From positions 1,193,783 to 1,205,060 of the forward strand of contig JAWQFM010000024.1 in NCBI GenBank assembly GCA_033442325.1: a DNA stretch of 11,278 nt. Direction: 5' to 3'. Of the stretch, positions 2,034-11,278 are shown piece after piece. This DNA is from Salpingoeca rosetta. Taxonomy: Eukaryota > Protista > Choanoflagellata. Below the pieces are notes generated by a model that was given only the letters and a program-made list of their open reading frames with translations, ran no database searches and was not told the origin of the DNA. Position numbers and translations under genes: made by a program. Numbering within the stretch: the first letter of the stretch is position 1; every line of letters starts with the position of its first letter.

Positions 2034-2449
2034 ACCTGCCTTCTTGCCTGTATCTGCTGTCCTTCCACAAACGAAAGTGCATCAAACTCCACCACTTTCT
2101 ACACCAGCTTCTGTGTGTCTTTGTTGGTGCAGTGGGTGTTGCTGCTTTGCTGAGGGGTGTGCTTTGCCGGCCGAAACTGCCCCTCAACATCTGCATCGCT
2201 GGCAGACAGAAACAAGAAAGGCCAAACCCCGTGTGCTCTACACATGTGTGTGTTCTTCCAAAGTGTGGGTGTGTGTGTGGCGCTCTTTTAAAGAAGTTGT
2301 TTCCAACAACAGATGTTCCCCTCCCCCCCCAAACAAAAAAAACAAAGTGTTCGTTGTTGTCAAAAAAAAAAAAAACAGCAAATAAAAATGGAAATGTGCT
2401 TCTCTCTTATATTACTTTTTCAAACACTCAAAAAAAAAACCTCTAATTG

Positions 2450-3338
2450 NNNNNNNNNNNNNNNNNNNNNNNNNNNNNNNNNNNNNNNNNNNNNNNNNNN
2501 NNNNNNNNNNNNNNNNNNNNNNNNNNNNNNNNNNNNNNNNNNNNNNNNNNNNNNNNNNNNNNNNNNNNNNNNNNNNNNNNNNNNNNNNNNNNNNNNNNNN
2601 NNNNNNNNNNNNNNNNNNNNNNNNNNNNNNNNNNNNNNNNNNNNNNNNNNNNNNNNNNNNNNNNNNNNNNNNNNNNNNNNNNNNNNNNNNNNNNNNNNNN
2701 NNNNNNNNNNNNNNNNNNNNNNNNNNNNNNNNNNNNNNNNNNNNNNNNNNNNNNNNNNNNNNNNNNNNNNNNNNNNNNNNNNNNNNNNNNNNNNNNNNNN
2801 NNNNNNNNNNNNNNNNNNNNNNNNNNNNNNNNNNNNNNNNNNNNNNNNNNNNNNNNNNNNNNNNNNNNNNNNNNNNNNNNNNNNNNNNNNNNNNNNNNNN
2901 NNNNNNNNNNNNNNNNNNNNNNNNNNNNNNNNNNNNNNNNNNNNNNNNNNNNNNNNNNNNNNNNNNNNNNNNNNNNNNNNNNNNNNNNNNNNNNNNNNNN
3001 NNNNNNNNNNNNNNNNNNNNNNNNNNNNNNNNNNNNNNNNNNNNNNNNNNNNNNNNNNNNNNNNNNNNNNNNNNNNNNNNNNNNNNNNNNNNNNNNNNNN
3101 NNNNNNNNNNNNNNNNNNNNNNNNNNNNNNNNNNNNNNNNNNNNNNNNNNNNNNNNNNNNNNNNNNNNNNNNNNNNNNNNNNNNNNNNNNNNNNNNNNNN
3201 NNNNNNNNNNNNNNNNNNNNNNNNNNNNNNNNNNNNNNNNNNNNNNNNNNNNNNNNNNNNNNNNNNNNNNNNNNNNNNNNNNNNNNNNNNNNNNNNNNNN
3301 NNNNNNNNNNNNNNNNNNNNNNNNNNNNNNNNNNNNNN
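2450..3338. other. Assembly gap (889 N)
   Basis: Run of N. The flanks (about 2200-2449 and 3339-3510) look like low-quality read ends. Confidence 0.99.
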
Positions 3339-3509
3339 ATTACCCGCTATTTCGGGTTTACGACGCTTAACATCCCCGCCCCACCACACCCCACACCATC
3401 GATACGAGTTGAGGCTTGTTTTATTTGCATCAAATGCAAGAGAAGGCGACGGAGGTGTCAGTGTGGGTGGCTGACGTACCCGACTTCTACGGGTTTTTTC
3501 TTTGTGGAA

Positions 3510-4043: not shown

Positions 4044-5340
4044 GTGAGCCGTGATGTGTGTGCGTGCGCGCTACACGTACATCTTTAAGTTGTTGTTCTT
4101 CCCACTGCAACAGTTGATCCTTTCTCTTCTGTTGGTGCTTTGACCTTTCTTTCGTGTTCCGTTCACATTGAGTGCGCTGGCTCAGTTCTTTGGCTCACAC
4201 CATCGAGCACGTTCAATACAGCCACTCATCCATCCAACAACACTTTCCTCTCAACACGAAACACGAATATACATCGCATATCCATCCCAGCGCCAGTCTT
4301 CCCAGGATCTTATGCATATCAAGCAGCCAAGCAGACACGCACTCCTCCTCTCGTCTCTCTGAGGCCTCCTGGCAGCTGTCCTTCTGCTTCTTCTGAGCAG
4401 GGCGGCTACTCCTACGTCAACGCCAGCCCCGATGGCCGCCTGCTGGTGGCTGAGTCGTTTATGTGGGACATGCACAGGCTGACATGCAAGCAGCGCATGC
4501 CCGTCACAGCAACCGACATGGTGTGGACCAAGGACGGCAGGCGCCCTAACCTCATCTGCCCCTCTTATTCCCGCGTGTACATCTGCGGCCTCGGTGTCCG
4601 GGAGGCTGAACGCACAGTCATCTTCGAGGATCCTTTCCTTGGCGCTGAGCTTGCATGCGCAGCCGCGCCCGATGGCACTCCGTGGGTCATCGAGAGGTGG
4701 CAGAAGGTGCCCTAGGAGTGCAAGCTGCACCGCGTGCCAGACCTCAAGTGCATGGCGGTCGTGCCGTGCCGTCCACCTCCGAACACACGCGCTGCATGGC
4801 AGTCACGCCCACCCTGTACATCGCGGGCAACAAGGCGGTGTCATCTCTTTGTGGCAGCTTGGTCAGCCATCGACCTTGCTTGCAGAGTGGAGGGCTGATG
4901 TTGTCGGTAATGGCGAGGAGACGATACAAGACGTGGGCGGAGAAGCAGCGAGAGGGGAAGTAGAGGCGGAACCGGCGAGCAAGGAGCGTAAGCGTACTGG
5001 CGTGGATGCGTTGCGTGTCACCCCTGATGGCCGCTTCCTGGTGACTGCGTCCACCTCCACCGACTTGCGCGTGTGGGATCTCAGCACCCTCACACCCACA
5101 CGATCAGCAACAACACAACATGAAGGGACAGCAGCAGTGGCGCCAACAACGACAATAGCAGCAACAACAACGACACGCCCGTTTGTATTTGTCGTGCGAC
5201 GTTGGCAGAACCCAAAGAGGTCACGGGCGTTCGTGTCCCGCGCATTGCAGCGTTTGCGGACCGCAGCCAAAAGTTTGTCTGCGCGTGCAGAAACACACTG
5301 CACGTCTACGTCATTGAACACCGGAAGCATGACGACCACC

Positions 5341-5387
5341 AGCAGGATCACCAGCAACAACAGCAGCGGCAGCAGCAACAGCAGCAG
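5341..5387 (+). repeat. CAG/CAA-rich polyQ tract within the WD40 region
   Basis: QQDHQQQQQRQQQQQ in ORF 5202-6008. Confidence 0.85.
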
Positions 5388-6970
5388 CACGTAAACGGCA
5401 GCAGTAGTGGTGTGAGCAGTGCGCTGACGCGTGTGGCGGTGTTGGATGGCTTGTTTGTGGACGAGGTAGAGCCAAACGCCAACATGACCGTCACTACCAT
5501 GGCCACGCACCCAACTGATGACAGCCTGCTGGCGATTGGCACTGCGCGAGGTGACGTGTTTGTGTGTGACGTCGCCAACCGCAAGGTCCTCAGCAAGCTC
5601 AAGGTGAGCAGAAACGTTCCGGTCAAGTACAGCGTCTTTGCCCGTCACAGCAGCGTGCTGTTCGTCAACTCTGTTGAGAGCGTGATCAAGTGCGACTACA
5701 GCACCGGACAGCACAGTACCATACTGCATCGCAATGACAGAGCAGATGACATGGTCATGTGCGACCACCAGCACCTGCTCACTGTTTCAAGCAGCGTTTC
5801 GCGAGGCAGGGTTGCCCTGTGGGCGCTGGGACCGACCCTGAATCGCGCCATGATCCCCACAGAGCAGTTTGACCTGTGCCATTTCCGCCCAACAACAGAC
5901 CCCAGATGCCGCCCCTACGCCATTGTGCCCATTGTTGTTCCACCAGCAACACCTCCCGCAGATGCGCACAAACTCGATGACTACATATCACTGCATTGCC
6001 GTACCTGACATCAACTGCCAAGCATCTTGACATGGCAAAGAAGATGATGGAAGGTGTGGTGTGTGTGGACTTTGTTGAGCAGCCATCCATGCTCAACACC
6101 GCCATCATGCGATCCAAGGACGTCAACGTCGTCCAGACCATCACAGCTTTCTTTGTCGCAACAGCACGCAGCACAGAGACCAGAGGCGACGCCGGACGCA
6201 TGCTGAGCAAGCCATTCCTCAACATTCCCAGGCTCGGCCCTGCCTTCACGGCCGACGTGACCTTGCTCACCAAGCACTTTCCCTCCATCGCCTCTGCTTT
6301 CCTCGACAGCCTCGGCCTCGTGCGGACGCGTGTGGGCGCTCCGGCAGAGATCCAGTTGCCGTCATCACGCATGATCGTCATGGGCGCGAACACCCTCAAC
6401 ATCAACCGCAACCTATGGGCCGACATGCGTGAGTCTGGTGAGCTGGCCAAGCTTGAAGACGCCAACTCAGCGGCTTCCCTGGTGGAGGCGCGGGTGGTGC
6501 CGTTGCCGCGTGCTGCTGGGTTTCTGAATGACGGTTCCAGCCTGCTTGAGACGCTGGTGGACACGGGCGATGCTGAGCTGTTTGGCAGCTTCATTGTTCG
6601 CGCCGTCATTCAGTACAAGTGGCAGACGAGCGGGCTGCGCCAGTTCCTGTGGGAGGCAGCGTGGTACATGCTCTCTGTCGCCCTCATCACCGCCCTCACC
6701 TTTGTTTTCAACACCAGCGGCAAGAACGTGGCCCAGCTGCTGGGTGCAGCCGACAACAGCAGCAACAGCAACAACGGCAGCGATGTCGTGTCCGTGATGA
6801 TCATGCTAGTGCTGGGCGTGCTGGCTGGCGTGGACATGGTGCAGGAGGTGCGGCAGTCACGGTTGGTGCACGGCTACTGGACGTGGCGTTCGTGGTGCTG
6901 AACACGTACTCTTTCCCAGTGCACACTTTTCCCAAGCCCATGCATGATGTGCCCTTTCCTGACCGTTGCG

Positions 6971-7771
6971 GTGTACTACCTGCAGCCGTTCCAGTCGACT
7001 GGCCCGCTGGTGCGCATGATCCTGGCCATCTGCTTCGACATGCGCTACTTCCTGTTGGTGCTTGGTATCAGCATCGTGGCCGGGTGGACGTCGTTCCGGC
7101 TGTTGCTGCTCAACGACAACACACTGCCGGTGGAAGGGCTGGGCGACCCAGCCAATGGGCTGCTGCTCATGTTCAACCTGCTGTTGCTGGCGGACTTTGA
7201 CCTGGACACCTTTGACGGCGACTACGTGGTGCTGCTGCGCATCCTGTTTGTCATCTCCATGGTGCTGGTCCCCGTCGTGCTGCTGAACCTGTTGATTGCG
7301 CTCATGTCAGACTCGTACGAGCGCATCCAGGACCGCGCAGACATCGAGTTCCAGCTGCTGCGCGCACGCATCTTGCGGGAGCAGGACGCGTGGCTGACGC
7401 TGGAGGGGAAGATGGATGCGCGACGCTTCCCCATGTGGCTGCACGTGCTCGTGCCCAAGGGCAGCGGCGTCGGCCGTGACGGTGGCAGCGTGCAGTGGCA
7501 GGGTGTGCTGCACGCCCTCAAGAAGGAGGTGGCAGACAAGGTGGAGGGTGTAGAAAGGAAGATGGGGGGTGTGGAAGGGAAAGTGGAGGGTATGGAGACT
7601 GGGTTCAGCAAGAGGCTTGACGCAAAAGTTGGAGGTGTAGACGAACGAGTCAAGTCTCTAGAAGAGAAGGTTGATCGCACGCTCGAGTTGCTGCAACAGC
7701 TGTTGGCTTGCGGCAGGGGTGATGGTGGTGGCGGTCAAGAAGAGCCGGTGCAGGGAATGGGGTTTACTTGA
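6971..7771 (+). CDS. Uninterrupted C-terminal part of the TRP-like channel (S4-S5 linker, S5, pore, S6, TRP helix, coiled coil)
   Basis: ORF 6944-7771 carries GPLVRMI, LLNLLIALMSDSYERI and heptad repeats. Stop TGA at 7769-7771. Confidence 0.85.
   Translation: MYYLQPFQSTGPLVRMILAICFDMRYFLLVLGISIVAGWTSFRLLLLNDNTLPVEGLGDPANGLLLMFNLLLLADFDLDTFDGDYVVLLRILFVISMVLVPVVLLNLLIALMSDSYERIQDRADIEFQLLRARILREQDAWLTLEGKMDARRFPMWLHVLVPKGSGVGRDGGSVQWQGVLHALKKEVADKVEGVERKMGGVEGKVEGMETGFSKRLDAKVGGVDERVKSLEEKVDRTLELLQQLLACGRGDGGGGQEEPVQGMGFT
7538..7645 (+). repeat. Degenerate 21-bp (heptad) coding tandem repeat, K[VM][EG]G[VM][ED]x
   Basis: aaggtggagggtgtagaaagg / aagatggggggtgtggaaggg / aaagtggagggtatggagact, plus a fourth unit at 7625-7645. 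Confidence 0.8.
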
Positions 7772-8327
7772 GTGGTTGATGTGAACGGGAAGTTGGTCGT
7801 GCGTGAGGTTGAGGGGACGGTTGCTGCTTGTGGCTTCTCTGGCTTCGATAGGGGAGCTGGCGTTGCGCTTCTGCTTCGTGTGTCGTTTTGATGTCGCTCT
7901 CCATTCCTTTGATTCGTGTTGCGCATCCACTTGTCGCACTGTCCACCCTCTTGAGTAAATGCGTGAGTTGAACTTGTCAAGGTTCACAGCGCAAAGTGAT
8001 GCTGGGGTCGCTGTTACTTGCTGCTAATGTATTTGCCATGTCTGTTGCCTGAGTGCAGTGAGTAGTAGTGCCTGAGTGTTGTGAGCCGCATTGGTTTTGT
8101 GCTTGTGTATTCGGCAAATGAAGGGAAGCAGCATCGGTGGCACGAAGAAGAGGGGTGTTGTGAAGTGGCGCAGGGTTTGGGTGAAGGAGTAAGAGTCTCA
8201 AAGAACGATGCTACGAACAGAAGAGCAAAGTGCCAATGTGAAAGGCCCTGAAACACAAAGGGCAACGGTGTCACCACACAACAAAGGAGGGGGGAACGGT
8301 GTAAGGAAAGGAAAAGACGGGCAGGTC

Positions 8328-8448
8328 GACAGACAGACGGAGGATGGACAGATAGACGGGCGGACGGGCAGATGAACAGACAGACGGGCGGACAGACAGA
8401 CAGACACACAGACAGGCACACACACACACACATACACACGCGCACACA
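8328..8448. repeat. Compound (GACA/GACG/GGCG)n + (CA)n simple repeat just downstream of the Roco-PARP stop
   Basis: Degenerate tetranucleotide run grading into a CA run. Confidence 0.85.
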
Positions 8449-8453
8449 TGTGG

Positions 8454-9587
8454 CTAGAGTTGCGCTGCGAGTGCTGTTTTGTCCACCTTGACAAACACCT
8501 TGGCGAATGGCAAAACCTGCGCCTCTTGTGAGACCACATACTCCTCGAAGTCAAAGGTGGCAGGCGTGTCGGTGGATTGATAGCTCATGCGTTTCGTCAC
8601 TTGAGCATAATGGGTGTCGCAGCCGTTCTTCAGCTTCTTGCCCCAGAACTTCTTGCACTTGTTTTCCCCAGACGATGGGTAGTCCTTACTCCTGGTGATC
8701 GGGTATGCGAGGCCGACGCTGGCAGCGCACAGGAGCATTACGTGCTCGCCATCTGCGTTGGGTGCGCGCCAGTTTCCAGTCAGCAGGCGTGTCGAGTAGC
8801 CAGCCGCGTAATTGGCCTGCGGCGTGAGGTAGATGCCAGCACCAAAGAAGCCAGGGTCGTTCGGGTTACTGAGGTTGGCGGTGCCCGCGGCGGTGATGTC
8901 GTCGGTGACAGCCTCGTCACAGCCGTGGAAACCAATCAGCACATTGACGTGGTTCACGCTGTCGGGTGTTTCTGCAAACTGCGTCTTGAGCCGATCGAGC
9001 ATGGCTTGTTTCTCCGGATCGCCAGCCCCAAAGTCCTTGTTGAAAGGGTTTTCAGGGTCTGCAGCAACGGTGTTGGTAGGGTCTGGATCGCCACGGCGCG
9101 TTGCCGACCGCTCCACCTGCGCTTTGAACGCCCGCAGCATCATGGTGGACTTGATCATCTCCACGCGCGACAGGGTGAGGCCCGGCGCCATCTGACTCTC
9201 AATCCATCGATAGAGGTCGGTGTTTGGTGGCAAGGGTGCCGAATACACGCCATGCGAGCTCGGTCCGCTCCACGGGAGCTGCTCATCAAAGGTGTCATCA
9301 AGCCGCCAAGCAGGGTGGTGCCACTCGTGGTCGCGCAACTGCCAAGACGGCATGACGGGTGGTCGTTGCGCGGGCGCCCGCAGCAACAGATCGCCAACGC
9401 GGTCGGACACTGGGGTCTGGCTTTCCCTGTGGTGCGTGGATGTGACGAGCTCGTCTGGGTCCTTGCCTGTCAGATCCTCAAGCTTGTGCGCAGCTGGGTA
9501 CTTTTCGTGGCGCTTCAGGTGTTTCGTGCTGAGGACGAGGTGGACGTGGTCAATCCCTGTTGCTTCCTCTTGCAGCACCGACAGCAC
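8454..9587 (-). CDS. Roco terminal exon: end of COR, linker and PARP-like catalytic domain (~9240-8470)
   Basis: His codon 8927-8925, Tyr codon 8831-8829, Glu codon 8543-8541, stop TAG 8456-8454. Confidence 0.9.
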   Translation of the reverse strand: MLSVLQEEATGIDHVHLVLSTKHLKRHEKYPAAHKLEDLTGKDPDELVTSTHHRESQTPVSDRVGDLLLRAPAQRPPVMPSWQLRDHEWHHPAWRLDDTFDEQLPWSGPSSHGVYSAPLPPNTDLYRWIESQMAPGLTLSRVEMIKSTMMLRAFKAQVERSATRRGDPDPTNTVAADPENPFNKDFGAGDPEKQAMLDRLKTQFAETPDSVNHVNVLIGFHGCDEAVTDDITAAGTANLSNPNDPGFFGAGIYLTPQANYAAGYSTRLLTGNWRAPNADGEHVMLLCAASVGLAYPITRSKDYPSSGENKCKKFWGKKLKNGCDTHYAQVTKRMSYQSTDTPATFDFEEYVVSQEAQVLPFAKVFVKVDKTALAAQL

Positions 9588-9681
9588 CTGTCGTCAACAC
9601 GCAAGTGAGCAGAGGATGAAATGAGGGCGAACCATGGAAAGCTGATCATTCGCTGACAAGCGATGGGCACAACAACGCAAG

Positions 9682-9732
<51 letters not shown>

Positions 9733-11277
9733 CACAACACACACACACACACACACACACACTCTCTCTCACACACACACAATCGCTCACAAACTGACCT
9801 TTGTCATGAATGGCAGGGCCTTGTGCTCTGCGCCAGAAGGCGCGCGCACCCACACGTCGACTTGTCGATCGCCACGCAGCAGTCCGAGGCACTGCACGCC
9901 ATCGTGTTCACAGAAGAAGGCATCCTTCCACACCCTAAGGGTTGTGCCAAACGAATTGTGCAGCAGTGTCTGCACGTGCGGGAAGAAGCCAGGTGGCAGC
10001 GCAAGTGCCTTGCTCTCGACCACCAGCAGTCGTCCGGCATAGAGAGGCCAGAAACCAGCTTGAGGCCAGGCGGTCGCAAGATCGACCTCCTCCTCAACAC
10101 GGCTCGGTAGCATGAATCGCTGTTGGCCATAGTTCGAAGGCGGCAGCTCGAAGCAGAGGAGCATGTGCTGCAGCACGTTGATGACGAGATCTGCGTCGGC
10201 GATGCCATCAAATGCGGTTTCCAGGTCCGTGAAGGTCAAGACGCCTTTTTTTGTGATCGAGCCTTGCTGCACGCCATCCGGCGTCAGCGCTCTCCCCAGC
10301 ACGTCATGAAGCAGCCAGTTGGGGTCAACAAAGACGAAATCCGCCAAGGATGGGGTGTTGGAATACCAGAGCAGATCGCCACGTGTGTGGAAGTACCTGT
10401 GTACATGTGTGGGAAGCAGGGACAGCAAGGGTGTAGGCGTGTGTGAGCATTCTGGCACTGGTCCTCAAGTCAGTCAACTGTTTGCACAACAAGGATGACA
10501 AATCTGCGAAGTCTTGCAAGCCTACCTCAGCGCAGAAGAAAACATTGTCATGTCAAAGGAGGTCAAGTCGAGTCCAGGCGTGTGGGTTCGGACAAACTGA
10601 AAGAGCGAATCGATGACCCACGCTGGCTTCTCATTCCTGGCTGACTGGAGGGCTGTCGCAAGCCGATCCACAACTCTGGGGACGAGAACCTCTTGCCCTT
10701 TCATCCACCGCCAGTTTCGCACAAGGCGCGCGCGAAGCGTGTTGAAACTGACATCACCACGCCCATGACAGTTGAGGGAGATGAGGCTGTCTTGGATGTC
10801 AACGATGCTGCCATACGTTCTTTTGAGGTGTGCGACCATCGCTGCGCTCCAAGTGGGCTGCCAAAATGCTTCAACAAGCCCAATCTTTCGGGCAAGATCC
10901 CTCTTGGTGCCCACGATCACGACGCGCGGCTTCGTGTCTTCTGTCTCGTCGTCGCCTGCTGTTGCTGTGGCAGCCGCAATGCCCTGCTTCAGTCGCGTGC
11001 AGATGAACTGCAGCCAGTAGTTGGCGCGCTCCTTCACGTGCTCTTCTGGTTGGGAGAGGTCGACGCAGACGACAAACGCAGCGAAGCGATCCGACATCAT
11101 GAGCGTGTGGATCACGTGATAGGCCCGGCTTCCACCAAAGTCGTACACATGAAGAGACGCAGTGTCATCGCTGCTGTGGCTCTGTTTGAGCTTCATTTCA
11201 CGGGCGCGAATGCCGGGCGTGTGCGCGCATGCCGTGGCGTGGATCGTGGCGTGGTTGCCAGGAAAAAGCTGATACAA
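8454..11277 (-). CDS. Roco protein (ROC GTPase-COR) with C-terminal PARP-like ADP-ribosyltransferase domain; 3' part, 3 exons, 5' end outside the window
   Basis: Exons >11277-10526 (AG|gtaggc), 10396-9799 (acacag|G..AAG|gtcagt) and 9587-8454 (gacag|GTG..TAG) splice in frame. ROC: HTPGI (G2), VYDFGG (G3), FVVCVDLS, YWLQFI, VVIVGTKRD (G4). COR: ALRYFHTRGDLLWY..FVFVDPNWL, FMLPSRV, LPPGFFPHVQTLL, VWKDAF. ART: GFHGC, GFFGAGIYLTPQANYAAGY, MLLCAASVG, DTHYA, EEYVVSQEAQVLP. Confidence 0.92.
9682..9781. repeat. Compound (CT)n/(CA)n microsatellite in Roco intron 9588-9798
   Basis: CT and CA runs. Confidence 0.95.
9799..10396 (-). CDS. Roco exon: COR domain
   Basis: YFHTRGDLLWY, VDPNWL, CFEL, FMLPS and PPGFFPHVQ motifs; canonical splice sites. 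Confidence 0.9.
10526..11277 (-). CDS. Roco exon: ROC GTPase (G2-G5) and start of COR
   Basis: DFGG at 11142-11131 and TKRD at 10908-10897. The P-loop is not within the window. Confidence 0.9.
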
Positions 11278-11278
11278 A

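Follow-up and report, generated by a model that had tools for sequence, protein, structure and literature searches.

The stretch of DNA analysed here (the window; 11,278 nucleotides) comprises the last 11.3 kb of scaffold C24 in the 55.4-Mb genome of the choanoflagellate Salpingoeca rosetta. On its minus strand, between positions 8454 and 11277, it holds the 3′ 2.8 kb of the gene PTSG_08520, in which the Roc GTPase and COR domains of a Roco protein are followed by a C-terminal PARP-type ADP-ribosyltransferase (ART) domain. PTSG_08520 is a real, transcribed Roc-COR-ART gene and not a gene-model artefact, as the initial annotation of this locus had maintained; the fusion is evident from RNA, from a public gene model identical to it, from colinear paralogues at 12 loci of the same genome, and from proteins of other choanoflagellates that carry Roc/COR together with ART.

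The coding sequence is distributed over three exons with canonical splice sites, and the borders that had been proposed for them (10526/10396 and 9799/9587) are exact by sequence. Exon 1 (10526..11277, running to the scaffold limit) encodes the C-terminal two thirds of Roc and the start of COR-A, identified by the Pfam Roc profile and by paralogue-aligned motifs, and ends in GAG/GTAGGC; intron 1 (10397..10525, 129 nt, GT..AG) separates it from exon 2 (9799..10396), which is preceded by CACAG, encodes the rest of COR-A and most of COR-B, and ends in AAG/GTCAGT. Intron 2 (9588..9798, 211 nt, GT..AG) contains a long (GT)n microsatellite. Exon 3 (8457..9587), preceded by GACAG, opens with the last helix and strands of COR-B and a low-confidence linker of ~45 residues (together 9201..9587, delimited on the structural model of the paralogue PTSG_13136) and continues into the ART domain of 248 amino acids (8457..9200; residues 553-800 of PTSG_08520; recognised by PF00644, a structural model and Foldseek), which is followed by the stop codon TAG at 8454..8456. 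On PTSG_13136, the start of exon 3 corresponds to residue 824, within the COR-B helix 815-833; the COR tail and the ART domain therefore do share one exon, as had been stated. The spliced three-exon frame has 827 open codons, and Pfam matches to Roc, COR-A and PARP on successive exons bear out the claim of a single open frame for the three domains. Over residues 28-827, the spliced product shows 100% identity to the public PTSG_08520 protein of 800 residues (XP_004990766.1; UniProt F2UJX3, labelled “PARP catalytic domain-containing protein”), so that both introns are also used by an independent public model; this model begins at its first methionine only owing to the scaffold end.

Stranded RNA-seq reads of two runs (X21 and X22), together with contigs of runs X1 (probably DNA) and X4, were mapped on positions 8300-11278. 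The RNA reads of X21 and X22 cover all three exons and leave both introns at zero depth, and nearly all RNA pairs have their first mate on the plus strand, which fits minus-strand RNA; coverage of the gene is low in the runs examined. The expectation that RNA would join the exons at both borders is directly borne out at the first of them, where a contig of X4 skips intron 1 exactly and joins 10526 to 10396 (CT..AC on the plus strand, equivalent to GT..AG on the minus strand). The 9799/9587 junction of PTSG_08520, in contrast, is not listed as a joint in the reads, whose depth there is below 1; it is supported by zero intron depth, by loose read ends at 9800, and by the identical public model. 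Four reads ending at 9800 run on into a paralogous version of the exon 3 start, so that a sister gene, too, uses this COR-to-ART splice. The ART sequence of PTSG_08520 itself is matched by independent read contigs at ≥99%. Two single-base mismatches were observed in the mapped region: at 8584, the assembly has C and all RNA reads as well as the X4 contig have G, with the DNA-like X1 agreeing with the assembly; at 9324, the assembly has C and most RNA reads (4/6 and 9/10) and the X4 contig have T. Both could represent a culture or strain difference, or reads of a close paralogue. Microsatellites of the (GT)n/(CA)n type fill intron 2 (about 9675-9788) and the 3′ flank of the gene (8300-8452), and were passed over as repeats in read mapping.

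The Pfam Roc profile matches exon 1 with an E-value of 1.9e-5; the Roc domain in the window is partial, with its P-loop beyond the scaffold end, and scores 25.3 bits against PF08477, below the cut-off of 27, and Roc of the paralogue PTSG_13043 reaches 36.2 bits. By alignment to its paralogues, exon 1 contains the switch I motif TPGI (11220-11209), the G3 motif DFGG (11142-11131) and the G4 motif TKRD (10908-10897). The G1, G3 and G4 motifs are kept in the Roc domains of those S. rosetta copies that extend far enough; the P-loop reads GDxGIGKTT in the copies that reach it (GDCGIGKTT in PTSG_13136). COR-A is matched by Pfam on exon 2 at an E-value of 8.6e-8; the COR-A matches of the window and of PTSG_13136 range from this value to 2.4e-8, with scores of 32.6-34.4 bits, just below the cut-off of 35.3, and the Pfam COR-B model gave no match at E-values up to 0.01. 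The presence of COR after Roc is evident from the structural model of PTSG_13136, which matches the isolated COR domain of Chlorobium tepidum (3dpt) with a template modelling (TM) score of 0.62-0.63, and LRRK1/2 with a probability of 1.00. For PTSG_08520 itself, the ESM Atlas model matches Roc-COR-A-COR-B clusters, along with Roc-COR proteins that are DAPK1-like, MFHAS1 or bacterial; among ESM Atlas clusters with at least 50 members near PTSG_08520, none joins Roc-COR to PARP.

The full-length architecture is visible in PTSG_13136 (1190 aa, scaffold C2), for which Pfam finds at least four leucine-rich repeats (LRRs) of the LRR_6 type, Roc, COR-A and PARP. A full-length model of this protein, built from 16 sequences, has a mean confidence (predicted local distance difference test, pLDDT) of 61.7, with good LRR and COR parts and a poor ART part; nothing more than domain order, the position of the COR-B boundary and fold comparisons was read from it, and contacts between domains were left aside. 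In the PDB, the model is matched best by LRRK1, the C. tepidum LRR-Roc-COR protein, LRRK2 and an isolated COR domain, and its LRRs match those of ribonuclease inhibitor and of NLRP proteins; the linker is modelled with a pLDDT of 41-54 around residues 891-920 and of 54-75 up to about residue 970. The full-length form consists of a short N-terminal helix, ribonuclease-inhibitor-type LRRs, Roc, COR-A/COR-B, the linker, and the PARP-type ART domain. No Pfam match to a NACHT or NB-ARC STAND ATPase was found in the window pieces or in PTSG_13136, where the matches are limited to LRR, Roc, COR-A and PARP. Cysteine-rich open frames upstream of the C2 copy were considered as an extracellular part of the same gene and rejected, because the public model PTSG_13136 passes from a short opening helix straight into the LRRs, and residues 1-47 of this model map at 100% to DNA immediately 5′ of the LRR exons.

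The PARP profile PF00644 matches exon 3 with an E-value of 3.4e-8 (33.7 bits; cut-off 26.7). No PDB sequence was retrieved when the exon-3 protein was searched by phmmer; a profile built from 48 homologues matched the catalytic domain of tankyrase-1 (E 1.4e-4), followed by PARP16, PARP12, PARP15 and PARP10, and aligned the motifs HG, G-x-G-I-Y and E-Y with those of tankyrase-1. An AlphaFold2 model of the ART domain, computed from the homologue alignment, reached a pLDDT of 93.5 and a predicted TM score of 0.90; the 50 PDB matches listed by Foldseek are exclusively catalytic domains of PARP1/3/10 and tankyrase (probability 1.00, E about 1e-9), and nine of the ten ESM Atlas clusters listed carry PARP or the related plant RCD1/SRO proteins (WWE-RST). 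The C-terminal PARP/ART fold that had been proposed is confirmed by the Pfam score, the model and these structural matches; the PARP helical regulatory domain is absent. The catalytic triad, placed by alignment to tankyrase-1, comprises H (8927-8925), Y (8831-8829) and E (8543-8541); among the 48 homologues, E is invariant and H and Y are conserved at ≥90%. With this complete H-Y-E site for NAD+, the ART domain of PTSG_08520 is apparently catalytically active, judging from its sequence. Conceivably, the domain could instead bind NAD+ or ADP-ribose as a sensor or pseudo-enzyme and serve as an input to the GTPase, not as its output; many PARP-family members are inactive or act by binding, the catalytic glutamate has been lost repeatedly (Citarelli et al., PMC2964712), and the S. 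rosetta domain has diverged from the PARPs of known structure (about 10-16% identity, TM 0.45-0.65). Inactive clades typically lose H or E, however, and the conservation of all three residues across diverse homologues, in alignment with the tankyrase triad, makes an input role very unlikely.

Scaffold C24 stops at the last base of the window, 11278, inside the Roc domain; the PTSG_08520 copy is therefore 5′-truncated and lacks the P-loop and the N-terminal LRRs. The initial annotation did not see this incompleteness; in addition, the first 15 codons are out of frame in the assembly. An extra base at 11234 is responsible; it is missing from all read contigs that cover the position, from X1 as well as from X4. 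The assembly frame 5′ of this base reads LYQLFPGNHATIHAT and is wrong according to the read contigs; with base 11234 removed, the first 15 codons read FVSAFSWQPRHDPRQ, in frame with the rest and identical to the C2 paralogue PTSG_13136, and the product after this deletion, FVSAFSWQPRHDPRQACAHTPGI, matches PTSG_13136. The read contigs across 11234 show the in-frame version only and extend past the scaffold end. The assembly version of the first 15 residues is probably an assembly error; since exon 1 is identical in the C2 copy, a genuine copy difference at this base is possible.

The S. rosetta genome contains 13 loci with this ART domain, at 56-100% identity, and at 12 of them a COR exon adjoins the ART in the same orientation; nine public models were recovered (PTSG_08520, 13136, 07514, 08728, 09285, 13043, 09099, 10355 and 09169), and the 90%-identity cluster of PTSG_08520 includes PTSG_13136 on scaffold C2 and PTSG_07514 (768 aa) on scaffold C20. 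Eleven of the 13 ART loci lie ≤65 kb from a scaffold end, within a zone that accounts for ~16% of the genome (binomial P about 1e-7). The three closest copies are mosaic: exon 1 of PTSG_08520 is identical at the DNA level to the C2 copy (C2:35472-38235), exons 1 and 2 are nearly identical to the C20 copy (C20:1226834-1229531), and the ART part is equally distant from both, at a synonymous divergence (dS) of about 0.1; this pattern suggests gene conversion among near-end copies. Pairwise ratios of nonsynonymous to synonymous divergence (dN/dS) between PTSG_08520 and its two closest copies range from 0.11 to 0.40 in COR, linker and ART, where differences suffice, and the coding sequence is therefore under constraint. 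Across six full-length paralogues, mean pairwise identity falls from 0.72 in ART and 0.71 in Roc to 0.49 in the LRRs, making these the domain that varies most, to an extent that repeat misalignment may exaggerate.

PTSG_07514 (C20:1226000-1235999), 97% identical to PTSG_08520, has no match 5′ of DFGG; its public model starts with MMSDRF, and an N-gap lies further upstream. This copy may be a 5′-truncated duplicate. A similar fate could be envisioned for PTSG_08520 itself, as a dead or truncated duplicate at a scaffold end in a family of which only the other members function; the end of scaffold C24 inside Roc, the one-base frame difference at 11234 in the assembly, and the existence of a nearly identical PTSG_07514 without the region upstream of DFGG would all be in keeping with such a copy. 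Yet the gene retains its 827 open codons, the contigs over 11234 are in-frame only and continue beyond the scaffold end, its own ART sequence is recovered in read contigs at ≥99%, dN/dS stays below 0.4, and RNA is present and spliced; a dead copy is accordingly quite unlikely.

An exhaustive HMMER search with exon 3 retrieved 458 proteins. Beyond S. rosetta, the combination of Roc/COR with this ART was found in Barroeca monosierra (1516 aa), in Salpingoeca infusionum (a complete open reading frame of 1233 aa from a transcriptome), and in a single protein of a sequencing run from an unknown organism. Other fusion partners of this ART subfamily are LRRK2-type armadillo repeats and PH, actin, DUF4116, NHL/EGF and FG-GAP modules; given such varied partners, it behaves like an effector domain that is mobile. 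Outside S. rosetta, the ART domains closest to those of the family (47-54% identity) occur in three metagenome proteins on short contigs (P0007, P0003 and P0168), where LRRK2-type armadillo repeats precede them and Roc-COR is lacking.

In Roc-COR, the next most similar Roco proteins of S. rosetta share about 33% identity with the Roco-ART family. These sister proteins, PTSG_12838, PTSG_12575 and PTSG_07288 among them, carry a TIR-like domain at the N-terminus; it is matched by TIR_2 in PTSG_12838 (E 5e-6), whose conserved N-terminus recurs in three others. Combinations of TIR with ROC-COR occur in TLR- and MyD88-like proteins of the mollusc Aplysia (PMC9334734), and one TIR domain of S. rosetta, which may or may not be part of a Roco protein, makes cyclic ADP-ribose (cADPR; bioRxiv 10.64898/2026.04.20.719644). 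Further TIR_2 matches were located at a distance of 5-12 kb from Roco or Roco-ART loci, on the same strand as these (C13:1706318-1706632, C29:26466-26747 and C25:68987-69292); among them may be N-terminal TIR exons that belong to Roco genes, or TIR genes that neighbour Roco genes in the same near-end clusters.

Elsewhere in the window, a second gene begins at 64-1850 on the minus strand; the exon with which it opens, MEELEALLARTELSKKGDEVKDNITTIANNTC, is similar to the N-terminus of Roco-ART proteins, and a run of single-repeat LRR_6 exons comes after it. Its interpretation as a tandem second Roco-ART gene was rejected, as no Roc/COR match occurs within the next 10 kb; by sequence, the gene looks like a relative with LRRs only. 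A plus-strand gene at 4140-7771, located between the two LRR-family genes, combines a beta-propeller-like part (5202-6005) with an ion-transport channel domain (PF00520; 6944-7768). An assembly gap, a run of N at 2447-3370, is bordered by long (GT)n/(CA)n microsatellites.

According to the initial annotation, no characterised Roco protein is known to carry a PARP domain; this stands as far as the literature is concerned, since no paper describing one was found, but the architecture is already present in public databases as uncharacterised proteins. A search of 8.4 million full texts returned nothing on Roco with PARP or ADP-ribosyltransferase, Roc-COR with a PARP catalytic domain, Roco with Salpingoeca, or the PTSG gene names; surveys of the PARP family that include choanoflagellates report an actin-PARP in S. 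rosetta, with no Roc or LRR partner, and the main Roco review lists no ADP-ribosyltransferase output. The Roco-ART architecture is thus visible in NCBI and UniProt under automatic domain labels, and is undescribed in the literature found.

By analogy with LRRK2 and the C. tepidum Roco protein (reviewed in PMC6337361), Roco-ART proteins could be understood as LRRK2-like or bacterial-Roco-like proteins in which the kinase is replaced by an ART. In this switch-effector mechanism, the variable LRRs would bind a ligand or partner, or keep the protein closed; Roc-COR would switch its conformation or dimer state with GTP; and the freed C-terminal ART would ADP-ribosylate itself or other targets and consume NAD+. 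The mechanism as a whole is given a probability of roughly 0.6. The initial annotation had proposed such GTP- or dimer-dependent gating together with a role in defence or cell death, and the support for this part is circumstantial, consisting of the lineage-specific expansion, the near-end location, the variable LRRs and the TIR-like sister clade. Its setting is most likely the sensing of conflict or stress, in an immune-receptor-like manner, and not housekeeping signalling, because the family is expanded, mosaic and located near scaffold ends, its LRRs are variable, and its sister clade is TIR-bearing.

Several observations weigh against this reading, in its mechanism or in its setting. The PTSG_08520 copy lacks the P-loop and LRRs, and its completeness rests on a sister copy that is 90-97% identical; its switch II reads DFGGS, as in PTSG_13136, versus DFGGQ in other paralogues. 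The P-loops of the Barroeca monosierra and S. infusionum homologues are degenerate, and control by GTP may therefore not be general. Since a low-confidence linker of ~45 residues parts COR-B from ART, allosteric coupling is less obvious than in LRRK2. Assembly breaks that arose from these very duplications could account for part of the enrichment near scaffold ends, and the pairwise dN/dS values indicate purifying selection. Finally, the Roco family of Dictyostelium is also expanded, to 11 genes, and its studied members act in chemotaxis, growth, cytokinesis and development, not in immunity (PMC2927912, PMC6337361).

The Dictyostelium precedent leads to a different view of the same architecture, in which Roco-ART proteins serve ordinary developmental or cytoskeletal signalling, with ADP-ribosylation as a regulatory mark and without a role in defence. 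The low RNA coverage, obtained in runs of unknown culture conditions, and the purifying selection on PTSG_08520 are compatible with such a role, as are the fusions of the same ART subfamily to actin, PH and armadillo (ARM) modules; the actin-PARP of S. rosetta has been tied to the cytoskeleton (Perina et al., PMC4245714). On the other hand, ~13 mosaic paralogues near scaffold ends, with LRRs as their most variable part and with a TIR-like sister clade, are more typical of receptor families in conflict systems, and ordinary signalling is judged the less probable setting, with a limited chance of being correct.

Within the preferred conflict- or stress-sensing setting, a true immune-receptor function of the Roco-ART family is itself doubtful. 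In its most explicit and quite tentative form, choanoflagellates would possess their own class of receptors, with a Roco GTPase in the place of the STAND ATPase: near-telomeric, recombining LRR-Roc-COR genes would be equipped with interchangeable NAD+-using effectors, either a C-terminal ART or an N-terminal TIR-like domain, and the sensing of microbes or damage would lead to ADP-ribosylation that shuts down or kills the cell. If true, this would constitute a third NTPase-based architecture of innate immunity, in the closest unicellular relatives of animals.

Roco proteins have been studied mainly on account of LRRK2 and Parkinson’s disease, and the control of the downstream enzyme by Roc-COR is still debated. 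A natural Roco protein with an ART output would provide an independent read-out of the coupling between Roc-COR and its enzyme, in a genetically tractable organism; the PARP field would gain a GTPase-regulated member; and, as regards how immunity evolved, an expanded family that combines LRRs, an NTPase and an NAD+-using effector is placed in the sister group of animals.

Among known systems, LRRK2 and LRRK1 and the Dictyostelium Roco kinases (Roco4, GbpC and Pats1) share the domain order of the Roco-ART proteins, with LRR, Roc, COR-A, COR-B and a C-terminal enzyme. In contrast to these kinases, the Roco-ART enzyme is a PARP-type ART and not a protein kinase; WD40, ankyrin and armadillo repeats are lacking, the LRRs are of the ribonuclease-inhibitor type (LRR_6), and a flexible linker follows COR-B. 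The C. tepidum Roco protein (PDB 6hlu and 3dpu) has the LRR-Roc-COR core in common with the Roco-ART family (fold probability 1.00; COR TM 0.62-0.64, target-normalised) and no enzymatic output domain; its dimer-monomer GTPase cycle is known there, and is assumed for Roco-ART. The tankyrases and PARP10, PARP12, PARP15 and PARP16, with tankyrase-1 as the best profile match, share the ART fold, the H-Y-E triad and the absence of PARP_reg with Roco-ART; besides its low identity to them, the Roco-ART domain differs by its own N-terminal extension of a beta-hairpin and a helix, and by having a GTPase switch as its partner instead of ankyrin, SAM, macro or WWE domains. The TIR and ROC-COR proteins of S. 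rosetta (PTSG_12838, PTSG_12575 and PTSG_07288) and of Aplysia (PMC9334734) join a Roco module to a domain that is typical of immune signalling and NAD+ chemistry; unlike Roco-ART, the S. rosetta TIR-Roco sister clade has its TIR-like domain at the N-terminus and carries no ART. NLR/STAND receptors with enzymatic effectors, such as plant TIR-NLRs and bacterial Avs, follow the same logic of a variable repeat sensor, an NTPase switch and an NAD+-using effector, and the expanded family and NLRP-like LRRs of Roco-ART add to the resemblance; yet the Roco-ART switch is a Ras-like Roc GTPase with COR and not a NACHT or NB-ARC domain, so that the likeness is one of logic and not of membership.

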